This document shows positions 1,039 through 8,110 of a DNA stretch of 8,288 nucleotides, piece after piece. The stretch is from Octopus sinensis (taxonomy: Eukaryota). How positions within the stretch are numbered: the stretch's first letter is position 1; each line of letters begins with the position of its first letter. Where the stretch lies: positions 1-8,288 of the forward strand of contig NW_021828463.1 of assembly GCF_006345805.1 (NCBI RefSeq). The letters run 5' to 3'. The notes below the pieces were generated by a model. It did no database searches and had not been told where the DNA came from. It was given only the letters and a program-made list of their open reading frames with translations. Position numbers and translations under genes: made by a program.

Positions 1039-1230
1039 GGAGAGTTTACGTAAAAAACAAAAGACGAAGGCAGGTGGTGCACAAAACAAACAGATGTATT
1101 AGTATAACGCTCAGGAACAGAAAAAGTCTTTTACATTTCGAGCCTACGCTCTTCCAGAGAAAGGGACACAGAAAAAAAAACAAAGAGAGAAAAAAATGTG
1201 TGTAGTGGCTAACGATCTATCATGGTATTT
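1039..1230 (-). mobile_element. Hammerhead-bearing non-coding element, copy 1 (putative non-autonomous Penelope-like / retrozyme-like)
   Basis: Homologous over ~190 bp to 5655-5830 (+) and 7913-8107 (-). Shared blocks include cacctgccttcgtcttttgtt, ctaataca and gaagagcgtaggctcgaaa. No ORF. Flanked by (AT)n on both sides. Confidence 0.8.
1128..1163 (-). ncRNA. Minimal type I hammerhead ribozyme motif, degenerate (G5C)
   Basis: Minus strand: CUUU-CUCUGGA-A-GAGC(GUAG)GCUC-GAAA-U-GUA/AAAG. Stem I CUUU:AAAG and stem II GAGC:GCUC are intact. The G5C change predicts inactivity. Confidence 0.6.
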
Positions 1231-1245
1231 CATGATAGATGTGTA

Positions 1246-1280
1246 TACATATATATATATAATATATATATATATATATT
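1246..1280. repeat. (AT)n microsatellite
   Basis: Direct reading. Confidence 0.95.
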
Positions 1281-1620
1281 TGAGACCCCCTTCGGTCACG
1301 ACACAGACCATGGGATTGCACCTAGAAAGTTATCCTCTCAGGCACAAGTCCGGGCAAGGTTGTTTATGGAAGACCAGCAGTCGCCCATGCATACCAGCCC
1401 CCCCTCTCCACGCCACCAGTGTTATCCAAGGGAAAGGCAAAGGGGCCGATACAGCTTGGCACCAGTGACGTCGCAACTCATTTCTACAGATGAGTGAACT
1501 GGAGCAATGTGAAATAAAGTGTCTTGCTCAAGAACACAACACGCAGCCCGGTCCGGGATTCGAGCTTACAACCTCACGATCGTAAGCTTGACGCTCTAAC
1601 CACTGAGCCATGCACTTCAC
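1281..1620 (-). mobile_element. tRNA-derived SINE family D, apparently full length (~340 bp)
   Basis: Minus-strand A box TGGCTCAGTGG (1600-1610) and B-box-like AGCTCGAATCC (1556-1566). Central gttgtgttcttgagcaagacactttatttcacattgctccagt, then a distinct GC-rich 3' part ending in (AT)n. Confidence 0.85.
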
Positions 1621-1865
1621 ACACACACACACACACACACACACATACATATATATATATGTGTAATATATTATATATAATATATATATATAATATATAT
1701 ATATATATATATATATATATATAGATAGATAGATAGAAGTAGATAGATAGATAGATAGATAGATAGATAGATAGATAGATAGATAGATAGATGTATATAT
1801 ATATATATATATATAATATATCTATATTATATATATATATATATATTATATATATATAATTATAT
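1617..1865. repeat. Compound microsatellite (CA)n-(AT)n-(GATA)n-(AT)n
   Basis: Direct reading. The GATA tract spans ~1722-1791. Confidence 0.95.
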
Positions 1866-2003
1866 CGGTTCAAAACTGTACAACATTAAGCTATAAAAGA
1901 CCAAGACATATAAATGAACAATAAACACGTGTATCAATTTGACATATATGGGGGAAAAATAATAAAACTGCTTGAAAATGCACGAAGTTTTCATCCATAC
2001 ATG

Positions 2004-2031
2004 TATATATATATATATATATACATATATA
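2004..2031. repeat. (AT)n microsatellite
   Basis: Direct reading. Confidence 0.95.
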
Positions 2032-2344
2032 CTTGAACAAAACAAGTTTTATTTAACATGGGAGACAAACAGTTTCATCATAAACTTATATGTGCGGAGC
2101 TAAAAATACGAAACTATGCCAGCAGATAACAAAACATTTATAGAACAATTTTACTATTAAAGCATCGGTGGCCTTTCTTACAAATTTTCACAGAAACAAC
2201 TCGTATTATTTGAAGGTTCTCGCAGAAGAAGGAAAAAAATAAGATTTTCTGGAAAAATTTTATTACATGTTGTAAGCAAAAAGATTTAGAAGAAAAATCA
2301 TATTTTACTCATGAAATTAATATTTTACACTGACCAGGTCCTGT

Positions 2345-2689
2345 TTTGCCAGAGCAGCCAACTGGCTTCCGTACCCGTGGCACATAAAAGGGCACTATTC
2401 GAGCGTGATCGTTACCAACGTCACTTCACTGGCACCTGTGCCGGTGGCATGTGCAAAAAGATTCGAGCAAGGTCATTGCCAGTACTGCCTGACTGGCCCC
2501 TCGTGCTGGTGGCACGCAAAAAGCACCCACTACACTCACGGAGTGGTTGGCGTTAGGAAGGGCATCCAGCTTTAGAAACTCTGCCAGATCAAGTTTGGAG
2601 CTTGATGCAGCCATCTGGTTCGCCAGACCTCAGTCAAAATCGTCCAACCCATGATAGCATGGAAAGCGGATATTAAACGATGATGATGA
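2345..2689 (+). mobile_element. SINE-like / LINE-tail element E with internal ~65-bp tandem units and (GAT)n tail
   Basis: Three degenerate ~65-bp units (2345-2528), then ggttggcgttaggaagggcatccagc...catggaaagcggatattaaac and a (GAT)n 3' tail at 2679-2689. This is typical of a non-LTR 3' end. No tRNA head is visible. Confidence 0.75.
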
Positions 2690-2754
2690 CTTTGCTTACC
2701 GCAGTTATATATTCTGTCCAGTACACAGTTGATTCTGCCAGCTCACTGCCTTAA

Positions 2755-2980
2755 CCCATTAAGTCCCACTGTCCTAGAAATAGGACACTAAATGAGAACA
2801 TTGAATAAGCTATACCACATTGTCTCAGTGTCCTATTTATAGGACACCAAGTATTTCCATTTCTACTTGAAGTAAAGGCGTTTTAATAATTATATTTTTT
2901 TCATTTTAATCTATTTTCAATCATCTGTAAAAATTTAAAAGCTAATATTCAGAAATTTAAGAACTCTGGGACTTAATGAG
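2755..2980. mobile_element. piggyBac-type MITE (226 bp)
   Basis: TTAA at 2751-2754 and 2981-2984. 14-bp TIRs CCCATTAAGTCCCA (2755-2768) and TGGGACTTAATGAG (2967-2980), with 1 mismatch. A CCC terminus plus TTAA TSD is the piggyBac signature. AT-rich non-coding interior. Confidence 0.85.
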
Positions 2981-2991
2981 TTAAGTCTGTT

Positions 2992-6282: not shown

Positions 6283-6609
6283 ATGGGTGCCGAGTTGACA
6301 TCATCAACAGCAGCAGCAGCAACAACAACAACAACAGTTGCAGTAACAGCAGCAGCAGCAGCATACCTGCACAGCAGTAACCCCCCTCGCCTCCCTTTTT
6401 ACAGTCTCAACAGCAAACATGCAGACGATACAGACGAGGCAGACGATACTCTCCCCCCCGCTCCAAGCTTTCTGCCTCCAACTGCCACTCTAACTCCTCC
6501 TCCAGTTATTTCGTTTACTCCCCTTCCTTCGATTCGTCAACGAAATTTCTGCTCGAAATCCTCGTCGCTCATTGGTTGCTTTCACTGTTTTCAGGTTTGT
6601 TTTTGTTAA
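6283..6609 (+). CDS. Possible low-complexity coding exon or ORF (108 aa; poly-A/T, acidic and Pro-rich); unverified
   Basis: ATG in strong context (aaaATGG), lies in non-repeat CpG-rich DNA, possible donor CAG/GTTTGT at 6594/6595. No recognisable domain, so it could be UTR. Confidence 0.22.
   Translation: MGAELTSSTAAAATTTTTVAVTAAAAAYLHSSNPPRLPFYSLNSKHADDTDEADDTLPPAPSFLPPTATLTPPPVISFTPLPSIRQRNFCSKSSSLIGCFHCFQVCFC
6300..6363. repeat. (CAG/CAA)n trinucleotide tract
   Basis: catcatcaacagcagcagcagcaacaacaacaacaacag..cagcagcagcagcagca. Confidence 0.9.
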
Positions 6610-6722
6610 GAAATATGGCGGGAAATTTATTTATAACGATAGTGGGGGTGGGTTGAGGGTGTACGGTGCGAGTTTAGGGTGGGGCGGACCGAGGTGAAAG
6701 CATTAGTCACTGTCAGGTAAGG
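6565..6722. promoter_or_regulatory. Putative TATA-less promoter / first-exon motifs
   Basis: CCAAT box on minus (AACCAATGAG, 6568-6577), YY1-like AATATGGCGG (6612-6621), GC box GGGGCGGA (6681-6688) and splice donor CAG/GTAAG (6716/6717). Motif matches only. Confidence 0.35.
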
Positions 6723-6781
6723 TACAGGATTTTCCAAAATCCAAAAATAAAATCGTACGTTTTTGAACGTGTTTGGTTACG

Positions 6782-7048
6782 TGTCTATCTATCTATCTCA
6801 ATCTTACTATCTGTGTGTGTGGGTATACACACACACACACACACACACACACACATATATATATATGTTATATGTATGTATATATATATGTCTGTATTAT
6901 GTATGTATGGATGTATGTATGTATGTATGTATGTATGTATGTATGTATGATGTATGTATGTATGTGATATTATATATGTATGTATGTATGTATGTATGTA
7001 TGTATGTATGTATTAGTATGTATGTATGTATGCTTGTATGTATGTATG
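6782..7048. repeat. Compound microsatellite (TCTA)-(TG)-(CA)n-(AT)-(TATG)n
   Basis: Direct reading. Confidence 0.95.
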
Positions 7049-7203
7049 TGAGTGCTGCGTGTAAGTAGCTTGCTTACCAACCACATGGTTCCAGGTTCAG
7101 TCCCACTGCGTGGCACTTTGAGCAAATGTCTTCTACTACAACCCCGGGCCTACCAAAGCTTTGTGAGTGGATTTGGTAGACGGAAACTGAAAGAAGCTCG
7201 TCG
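7049..7203 (+). mobile_element. SINE B 5' half (head to start of internal microsatellite)
   Basis: gtaagtagcttgcttaccaaccacatggttccaGGTTCAGTCCCactgcgtggcactttgagcaa..ggaaactgaaagaagctcgtcg is the reverse complement of 4559-4715. Confidence 0.9.
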
Positions 7204-7247
7204 TGTGTGTATATATATATATATTATATATATATATAATATATATT
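7204..7247. repeat. (GT)-(AT)n microsatellite
   Basis: Direct reading. Confidence 0.9.
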
Positions 7248-7253
7248 ACACCC

Positions 7254-7306
7254 CTTGCGCAAGGTGTCTCACAGTGGGACCGAACCCAGAACCATATGAT
7301 TGGGAA
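7254..7306 (-). mobile_element. SINE B head fragment, inverted relative to 7049-7203
   Basis: cttgcgcaaggtgtctcacagtgggaccgaacccagaaccatatgattgg aligns to 4637-4686. Confidence 0.75.
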
Positions 7307-7645
7307 TATATATAAAGTCCTTGGAGGGCAGAAAGACAGGGTATTTACAATGTATTGCTTAACCAGAGCTTTAGGCAATCTACAATGTGGCTTTCCAGAC
7401 GAATATCAAAATTCTTCAGGTATAGAAACTCCTGGTTTCTCGACGGTAAAACCGTTGCATGGGTTTAGCAAAAGGTGAAATATAATCTGAATAAGAGGAC
7501 ATCTTCACACATCTTTAATGATCAGGTACAAGTGTCTTGTGCGCCATCTCTTCTTGCGACGCCATTTCACGCAAAAGTTCGAAGTGGAAATTTACGTAAT
7601 ATTTGCGGTTTTAGATATTAGATTGACACTTCCTTAGACCTGCAT

Positions 7646-7872
7646 CAAAGCAACATAGATAGGTAGATGGATGGGTGGATGGATGGATGAATGGATGGAT
7701 GATGAATAGATAGATAGATAAATAGATAGATAGACAGAGAGGTAGATAGATAGATAGATAGATAGATAGATAGATAGATAGATAGATAGATAGATAGATA
7801 GATAGATAGATAGATAGATAGATAGATAGATAGATAGATAGATAGATAGATAGATAGATAGATAGATAGATA
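7646..7872. repeat. (GGAT)n-(GATA)n microsatellite
   Basis: Direct reading. Long pure GATA run at ~7743-7872. Confidence 0.95.
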
Positions 7873-7875
7873 ACA

Positions 7876-8110
7876 GGAAGCTTTATGAAAATAGACAAAA
7901 GACGAAGGCAGGTTTACGGAAATAAACAAAAGACGAAGGCAGGTGGAATACAAACAAACAATTGTATTAGTATGGCGCTCAGGAAATATAAATAAAACAA
8001 GTCTTTAACGTTTCGAGCCTACGCTCTTCAACAGAAAGATACACAGAGAAGAAACACAGAAAGAAGGAGAGAAAAAAATGCGTGCAGAGGCTAGCGAATC
8101 AACATGGCGA
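7876..8110 (-). mobile_element. Hammerhead-bearing non-coding element, copy 3 (may extend to ~8170)
   Basis: Homologous to copies 1 and 2. The 3'-terminal 31 bp is tandemly duplicated (7882-7912, 7913-7943). Embedded in GATA repeats. Confidence 0.8.
8002..8039 (-). ncRNA. Minimal type I hammerhead ribozyme motif, class 1 (best-formed copy)
   Basis: Minus strand: UCUUU-CUGUUGA-A-GAGC(GUAG)GCUC-GAAA-C-GUU/AAAGA. Stem I 5 bp perfect, stem III palindrome AACGUU, predicted cleavage between 8007 and 8006. Confidence 0.72.

Follow-up and report, generated by a model that had tools for sequence, protein, structure and literature searches.

We analyzed an 8,288-nt stretch of DNA from Octopus sinensis (NCBI RefSeq assembly GCF_006345805.1, contig NW_021828463.1, positions 1 to 8,288 of the forward strand), referred to below as the window, and found three copies of a hammerhead-ribozyme-like motif embedded in three copies of one dispersed repeat. 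The repeat has ends like those of Penelope-like element (PLE) insertions, and the motif resembles the minimal type I hammerheads that PLEs carry. We consider it likely that each of the three sites is an old insertion, truncated at its 5' end, that derives from the 3' part of a PLE or from a short element mobilised by one, and that all three carry relic hammerheads in which the A of core position 6 has been replaced by U (A6U). Judged from the sequence, the motifs are most likely remnants of an ordinary ribozyme, weak or dead, and not a new ribozyme variant. An earlier note on this DNA, written from the letters alone, had identified the three motifs and had proposed that U6 is a fixed, family-level variant of the hammerhead core.

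The three motifs share a 27-nt pattern, CTSTNGAAGAGCGTAGGCTCGAAAYGT, which has exact matches at 1133-1159 (minus strand), 5703-5729 (plus strand), and 8008-8034 (minus strand) and only these three in the window. The pattern was absent from all 200 dinucleotide shuffles of the window. With the adjoining stem I, the motifs are as follows.

1128 to 1163, minus strand: copy 1 of the hammerhead-like motif; core CUCUGGA-A, with two core changes (G5C and U6); A15.1-U15.2-G16.2-U16.1, the CpG having decayed to UpG; H17 is A at 1132; stem I of 4 bp.
5698 to 5735, plus strand: copy 2 of the motif; stem I UUUUU/AAAGA; C3 at 5703, U6 at 5706, N7 is A, extra A at 5710; stem II 5711-5714/5719-5722 with loop GUAG; GAA at 5723-5725; ACGU at 5726-5729; H17 is A at 5730.
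8002 to 8039, minus strand: copy 3 of the motif; stem I UCUUU/AAAGA; C3 at 8034, U6 at 8031, N7 is U, extra A at 8027; stem II GAGC/GCUC; ACGU at 8011-8008; H17 is U at 8007.

Read base by base, all three motifs follow the same order. The 5' strand of stem I (4-5 nt) is followed by C3, U4, G5 or C5, U6, N7, G8, A9, and an extra A. The motif then continues with GAGC-GUAG-GCUC, G12, A13, A14, A15.1, C or U at 15.2, G16.2, U16.1, H17, and AAAG(A), which pairs back to the 5' strand of stem I. The implied cleavage sites are 5730/5731 in copy 2, 8007/8006 in copy 3, and 1132/1131 in copy 1. The locations of the motifs, their structural reading, and the cut sites of copies 2 and 3 all agree with those given in the earlier note.

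Compared with the canonical core (C3 U4 G5 A6 N7 G8 A9...G12 A13 A14), all three copies have U6, copy 1 also has C5, and the remaining positions equal the consensus. The G10.1-C11.1 pair closing stem II, A15.1 and U16.1, and an H17 that is never G (A, A, and U) were present in every copy. Stem I directly adjoins the core through an A-U pair at 1.1-2.1. It stays paired in all copies over 4-5 bp, as had been claimed, but the pairing (AAAGA/UYUUU) is weak and its sole variation is a one-sided change from G-C to G-U. There is no loop III, and positions 15.2-16.2 are palindromic, reading ACGU in copies 2 and 3; the AUGU of copy 1 can pair with itself via two G-U wobbles. Helix II consists of 4 bp capped by a GUAG loop, which is shorter than the 6-8 bp expected of PLE minimal hammerheads. 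Two other registers were considered and rejected. With xxGAAGA read as the core, stem II shrinks to 2 bp and two bases are left over before G12; with the U counted as an insertion behind G5, position 8 becomes A instead of G.

To gauge how often such a motif arises in comparable sequence, we used our own descriptor for hammerheads lacking loop III. It requires at least 4 bp in stem I, CUGANGA, at least 3 bp in stem II with G10.1-C11.1 scored as a core feature, GAAA, pairable 15.2/16.2, U16.1, and H17, and it allows one extra base after CUGANGA. With up to two core mismatches allowed, the matches on both strands of the window were these three sites only. In 961 dinucleotide-preserving shuffles (15.9 Mb scanned), the descriptor found no site with one mismatch or fewer, 3 sites with two mismatches, and 22 with three. 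By extrapolation, roughly 4e-4 one-mismatch sites are expected per window.

These counts bear on the possibility that the resemblance arose by chance, in which case the motif would be no more than an imperfectly paired 38-nt hairpin from the 3' region of an unrelated short or long interspersed nuclear element (SINE or LINE), for example a stem-loop recognised by a reverse transcriptase. One core position does misfit, whole genomes are expected to contain some one-mismatch sites, and the window contains no PLE gene. The minimum-energy fold of each copy is moreover a rod-like hairpin, in which U4-G5-U6 is paired with A15.1-C15.2-G16.2. The low expectation per window argues against chance, and further points against it come from the repeat around the motif and from PLE hammerheads of other animals, described below. 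Taken as a whole, we regard a chance origin as very unlikely.

Each motif lies within a copy of a repeat of about 200 nt. The repeat copies and the sequences bordering them are as follows.

1039 to 1243, minus strand: copy 1 of the retroelement fragment, 5'-truncated, with its 3' end (...CGTAAACTCTCC) at 1039.
5650 to 5829, plus strand: copy 2 of the retroelement fragment, which begins closest to the motif, about 50 nt upstream (5' boundary to within about 5 nt).
7876 to 8165, minus strand: copy 3 of the retroelement fragment, which reaches furthest upstream of the motif, by about 130 nt, and bears an extra 3' unit.
7876 to 7906, minus strand: the 31-nt "tail" that extends copy 3 at its 3' end and is optional in the repeat; it duplicates in tandem the terminal unit CTGCCTTCGTCTTTTGT.TATTT..TAAA.
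972 to 1038, no strand: (TA)n on the 3' side of copy 1, with partner (TA)n at 1244-1279 on its 5' side.
7655 to 7872, no strand: (ATAG)n/(GATA)n on the 3' side of copy 3, with partner (AGAT)n at 8168-8287 on its 5' side.

A three-way alignment of the copies covers about 190 nt, with pairwise identities of 84-90%, and indels set copy 1 apart from copies 2 and 3. No two copies share a 5' end: counted upstream from the 5' edge of stem I, copy 2 starts at about 50 nt, copy 1 at about 80 nt, and copy 3 at about 130 nt. The 3' end (...CGTAAAC + YTYCC) is common to all three, and each copy stops at the identical phase of the terminal unit (AAAC/G + YTYCC). Copy 2 ends in ...CGTAAACTTTCC, followed only by a short TA/TG-rich stretch. 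The tail of copy 3 was also detected by Tandem Repeats Finder (TRF; period 31, 2.3 copies, 7875-7944) and as family D7 in our repeat search. Copies 1 and 3 each sit inside a single microsatellite. The element carries the motif on its sense strand, with the cut site 93-100 nt from the 3' end, or 131 nt when the tail is included. The copies are dispersed along the window (at 1.1, 5.7, and 8.0 kb) and occur in both orientations. Since the three motifs share one repeat, they count as one ancestral event and not three.

These features are hallmarks of PLE insertion. PLE insertions are frequently 5'-truncated, carry a tail of 30-40 bp, and are biased toward microsatellites such as (TA)n (Craig et al., PMC8557442). 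The tail is the stretch between two adjacent internal start sites of reverse transcription that lie downstream of the hammerhead (Frangieh et al., PMC11167929). In Octopus vulgaris, PLEs make up a sizeable repeat order that underwent an old expansion and also includes some young families (PMC13282606). In PLEs, a minimal type I hammerhead lies close to the junction between the pseudo-long terminal repeat (pseudo-LTR) and the internal region, and two sites some tens of nucleotides further downstream serve as alternative starts of reverse transcription. Any copy truncated at its 5' end therefore bears the hammerhead some 50-100 nt before its 3' end and may or may not have a tail of 30-40 nt, and the window copies show this anatomy. 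The sense-strand orientation and the location upstream of a PLE-type alternative 3' end are both points against a chance hairpin, and microsatellite on both sides fits insertion into a repeat and not a LINE-style 3' tail.

The same motif, with the same ancestry, could instead belong to a short non-autonomous element: a "retrozyme" present as a solo monomer, or a SINE-like unit riding on PLE machinery. No copy reaches more than about 130 nt upstream of the motif or into coding sequence, as such a unit would predict. Animal non-LTR retrozymes contain type I hammerheads, occur also as solo monomers, and have been argued to derive from PLE pseudo-LTRs (bioRxiv 10.64898/2026.07.22.740005; PMC7229834). 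However, the three 5' ends differ, as in truncation, and do not define a single start. TRF found no tandem array of the repeat unit in the window, and partial tandems of the pseudo-LTR kind were likewise not seen there. Three copies are also too few to define a full-length unit. We think this explanation quite improbable and favour truncated insertions of the 3' part of a PLE.

We searched for more copies of the repeat. Exact-pattern scans of metagenome contigs returned chance bacterial and phage matches only, and scans of viral contigs and prokaryote genome contigs also gave only chance matches. A six-frame concatenated peptide query from the repeat had no match in a set of 5.8 billion proteins, a full-text literature search for the motif strings found nothing relevant, and a scan of viral contigs found no PLE proteins.

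To place the motif among PLE hammerheads of other animals, we took the Poseidon_Ac sequence from the supplement of PMC11167929 and used part of its protein as a query for PLE proteins. The comparison covered five PLE loci, from Anolis (L018), Tenebrio (L019), Sitophilus (L020), the spider Uloborus (L021), and lamprey (L022). Six distinct hammerheads adjoin the open reading frames (ORFs) of these loci, with the form CUGANGA-N-G(6 bp)C-GAAA-CG-U-H and a stem I of 3 bp. Stem II has 6 bp and A6 is invariant in all six. A base (U, A, or C) follows A9 in each of the six, as the extra A does in all three window copies. The earlier note had counted this extra A as a deviation of the core. It is instead a consistent trait of metazoan PLE minimal hammerheads, as are the palindromic 15.2-16.2 and G10.1-C11.1 (PMC4209133). 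The window motif shares a base after A9 and GAAA-CG-U-H with all six comparators. Neither these features nor its G10.1-C11.1 pair is forced by a hairpin, which again speaks against chance resemblance.

Paired copies in the loci of Anolis, Tenebrio, and Sitophilus cease to match at one of two distances downstream of the cut site, 52-55 nt or about 89 nt. These two ends, about 35 nt apart, form the same pattern as is seen in the window, and they agree with the ends described for PLEs (PMC11167929, PMC8557442). The Tenebrio hammerhead has U4C and a G10.1-U11.1 wobble and adjoins an intact PLE ORF. It is located at 4928-4975 on the plus strand of the Tenebrio molitor locus and reads CCGAAGA-A-GAUAGC...GCUAUU-GAAACGUC, with an inverted copy upstream at 1801-1848 on the minus strand. 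The family to which this core-variant hammerhead belongs is apparently young, with 93 member sequences in its cluster.

We built a covariance model, R1, from the alignment of the six PLE hammerheads, with no window sequence included, and ran it unfiltered. E-values were roughly calibrated. The best match in the window was copy 3 (8000-8041, minus strand; 16.1 bits, E of 0.0071 at this rough calibration), and the second was copy 2 (5696-5737, plus strand; 15.2 bits, E of 0.013, likewise rough). The next match in the window scored 8.6 bits, and copy 1 gave no match at E ≤ 10. The model aligned copies 2 and 3 in the very register that the earlier note had preferred to xxGAAGA. Together with the insertion hallmarks around the motif, these weak matches support its view of a minimal type I hammerhead-like motif of the PLE kind that has a palindromic stem III and lies on a retroelement's sense strand. 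By this comparison, the window motif appears recognisably of the PLE-hammerhead kind but an outlier within it.

The Rfam hammerhead models found no match in the window at E ≤ 10, which could be taken in favour of a chance hairpin. A search with Rfam release 15 at E ≤ 10 with permissive filters found no hammerhead in the Anolis or Tenebrio locus either, although the Anolis locus bears two hammerheads with canonical cores (2988-3036 and 5626-5674). As the Rfam models miss the validated Poseidon_Ac hammerhead of the anole, the negative result in the window carries no weight for this class. Minimal hammerheads without loop III are invisible to the Rfam hammerhead models.

We then asked what the three copies reveal about position 6. 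The motif is no more conserved than its surroundings: 6 of its 38 columns are variable (16%), compared with 30 of 174 over the whole repeat (17%), and three-state columns like N7 are also present outside it. Within the motif, copies 2 and 3 differ at position 2.4 of stem I, where either C or U keeps the pair with G1.4, and at N7 and H17. The earlier note had drawn attention to the variation at N7 and H17; the differences are real but statistically unremarkable. No compensatory change was found in the stems among the three copies. Three independent A-to-T changes at one site are not credible, and the alignment therefore indicates that U6 was already in the source element or elements. It may predate a small subfamily split between copy 1 and copies 2 and 3. 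The notion of a fixed family-level core variant was drawn from three related copies; they place U6 in the source element or elements, but the family-wide and functional part of the notion was overstated. Because PLE insertion does not need the ribozyme, the persistence of U6 is uninformative on function.

The strongest form of that notion is that CUGUNGA is a functional, family-level core variant of the PLE hammerheads of octopods, which cleaves itself as a dimer via ACGU, perhaps aided by protein, and is missed by searches for CUGANGA. Several observations are consistent with this. U6 is common to all three copies despite 10-16% divergence elsewhere and indels, and it did not stop the spread of the repeat. 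The remaining core is intact in copies 2 and 3, whose differences within the motif are limited to the pair-preserving 2.4 and to N7 and H17. Core deviations near intact ORFs are known from Tenebrio (U4C and G10.1-U11.1) and from the Schistosoma mansoni PLE hammerhead, which has U3-A8 (PMC4209133). In vitro, even canonical PLE hammerheads show poor cleavage and can depend on the protein of the element (PMC4209133, PMC11167929), and such assistance might buffer a weak core (PMC11167929).

Other evidence points away from function. A6 is kept in all six comparators, and the motif is conserved to the same degree as the rest of the repeat, without compensatory stem changes. In a comprehensive pairwise mutagenesis, single and double mutants of the CUGA turn were low in activity, except for a swap of the C3/G8 pair (PMC9901934). 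The cleavage rate of a naturally occurring A6C hammerhead is below 0.1 per min (PMC3088659). Spread does not depend on cleavage: mutation of the hammerhead catalytic core left PLE insertion in vitro unaffected (PMC11167929), and Naiad PLEs proliferate without canonical hammerheads (PMC8557442). The earlier note had also invoked a partner for dimer cleavage, but the copies are solitary and no tandem partner was found in cis at these loci. A functional U6 core is, in our judgement, unlikely.

The reading we prefer, that of relic hammerheads in truncated PLE copies, accounts for these observations as follows. The motif would descend from a PLE hammerhead and would have kept the absence of loop III, the ACGU palindrome, the base after A9, and G10.1-C11.1. 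In the intact ancestor, two copies would have paired via ACGU to form helix III, and cleavage after H17 would have trimmed long or tandem transcripts. The source element had U in place of A at core position 6. This change lies in the CUGA turn, which shapes the active site, and would leave a weak or inactive ribozyme. U6 also adds a U6-A15.1 pair, which makes the rod-like, non-catalytic fold 1.5-1.8 kcal/mol more stable than in an in-silico A6 version. The motif is thus probably catalytically impaired, and we infer that hammerhead activity has been lost. The family could still spread because PLE retrotransposition needs no hammerhead cleavage. At the three loci, the motifs would be solitary passengers with no partner copy on the same strand, copy 1 having gained a second core mutation. 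A previous hammerhead survey found that its rejected matches were mainly cryptic mutant hammerheads in repeated elements (PMC3088659).

Several points weigh against this reading. The window copies score only 15-16 bits on R1, compared with 48-59 bits for the training sequences, the low scores being due to the 4-bp stem II, the A/U-only stem I, and U6. Stem II itself is shorter than the usual 6-8 bp. The distance from the cut to the 3' end (93-100 nt) is somewhat longer than in the comparators, and the tail duplicates the preceding unit, which has not been described for other PLEs. No ORF for a PLE reverse transcriptase or GIY-YIG endonuclease was found in the 8.3-kb window. Such an absence is expected for strongly truncated copies, and with neither gene in the window we infer PLE parentage from the repeat ends and the motif. 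Copies 2 and 3 on the one hand and copy 1 on the other may represent two subfamilies that both keep U6, as expected if U6 is tolerated or useful. Finally, mutational data from other hammerheads may not be fully transferable, as even canonical PLE hammerheads cleave poorly in vitro and can be protein-assisted.

If the U6 core did prove active, a natural A6U hammerhead would refine the rules for the active site, in which position 6 is among the least tolerant. All descriptors based on CUGANGA, as well as the Rfam models, would then miss A6U hammerheads, and ribozymes would be under-counted in invertebrate genomes. PLE clades said to "lack canonical hammerheads" might likewise carry unrecognised variants. 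A solid practical by-product of the analysis is that negative results with Rfam models say nothing on PLE minimal hammerheads.

The rest of the window is rich in microsatellites and SINE-like repeats. No tRNA genes and no long credible ORF were found in it. An inverted pair of a 164-nt SINE-like repeat is located at 4539-4702 and 7061-7224, the two being 88% complementary and each adjoined by (TA)n. Peptides derived from the SINEs of the window match SINE-derived stretches of the Octopus bimaculoides gene model A0A0L8FSD0 (60-75% identity) and a second protein, a metaclust entry (85%), and these matches point to an octopod as the most likely host. Database look-ups of A0A0L8FSD0 and of the SINE-containing metaclust entry returned no records. 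At least four copies of another short repeat, with GGCGGAATTTGAACTCAGAAC, were found at 1-106, 3088-3193, 4979-5071, and 5454-5548, in both orientations and with 72-82% identity. The repeat bearing GGCGGAATTTGAACTCAGAAC is probably a second SINE family. A GC-richer repeat at 2340-2700 contains internal near-duplicated units (GGCAC...GTGCCGGTGGCA...) and ends in GATGATGATGA; it may resemble abundant octopus interspersed repeats.

A near-perfect hairpin of about 100 nt occupies 5085-5191, with arms at about 5105-5170. It matched mir-786 at 33.9 bits against a gathering score of 93, and is more likely to consist of inverted repeat fragments or a miniature inverted-repeat transposable element than to be a microRNA. 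Other Rfam microRNA matches (mir-3149, mir-1277, mir-297, and others) were rejected as artefacts: they coincide with (TA)n, (CA)n, or (TATG)n arrays, and their scores fall far short of the gathering scores. The simple-repeat sites of the better-scoring ones include 4493-4567 and 6804-7042. On the plus strand, a 108-codon ORF with an ATG start runs through CAG/CAA/ACA repeats at 6283-6609 and encodes a poly-Ala/Thr and then Pro-rich product. It may be a low-complexity first exon or the mere translation of a repeat. An exact look-up of three ORFs of the window, including the product of 6283-6609, returned no record.

Among known systems, the window motifs are most similar to the minimal hammerheads of metazoan PLEs (Cervera & de la Pena 2014, PMC4209133). 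Both are type I, lack loop III, and have palindromic 15.2-16.2, one unpaired nucleotide between A9 and G10.1, the G10.1-C11.1 pair, and a short helix I, and both occur mostly as single dispersed motifs in truncated elements. The window copies differ in having U6, a 4-bp helix II with a GUAG loop, and no adjoining PLE ORF in view. A closer comparison is provided by Poseidon_Ac (PAc) of Anolis carolinensis, which has been shown to cleave and is the one PLE hammerhead assayed with its own protein (PMC11167929). The layout of PAc, CUGAGGA-U-stem II-GAAA-CG-U-C, corresponds to CUGUNGA-A-stem II-GAAA-CG-U-H in the window motif. Both lie upstream of start sites of reverse transcription or the corresponding 3' ends: terminal copies of PAc end about 89 nt after the cut and the window copies 93-100 nt after it, with an optional tail of about 30-40 nt in both. 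Unlike the window motif, PAc has a canonical core, a 6-bp stem II, an ORF that starts inside the ribozyme, and a score of 58 bits on R1.

The window copies also resemble natural core variants of other hammerheads, such as A6C in phage Bcep176, U4C in a viroid, and inserted bases (Perreault et al. 2011, PMC3088659), which have a single core deviation and are otherwise complete. Those variants were assayed, whereas the window copies are known from sequence alone. Non-LTR retrozymes share with the window repeat a short non-coding form, type I hammerheads, and kinship with PLE pseudo-LTRs, and solo monomers of them exist. Retrozymes are, however, tandem units, each with a hammerhead, that give rise to circular RNAs, while the window copies are dispersed, in both orientations, and 5'-truncated. 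Relative to the very large class of PLE minimal hammerheads, the window motif is probably one more such hammerhead in a truncated PLE, a setting in which mutated copies are common.

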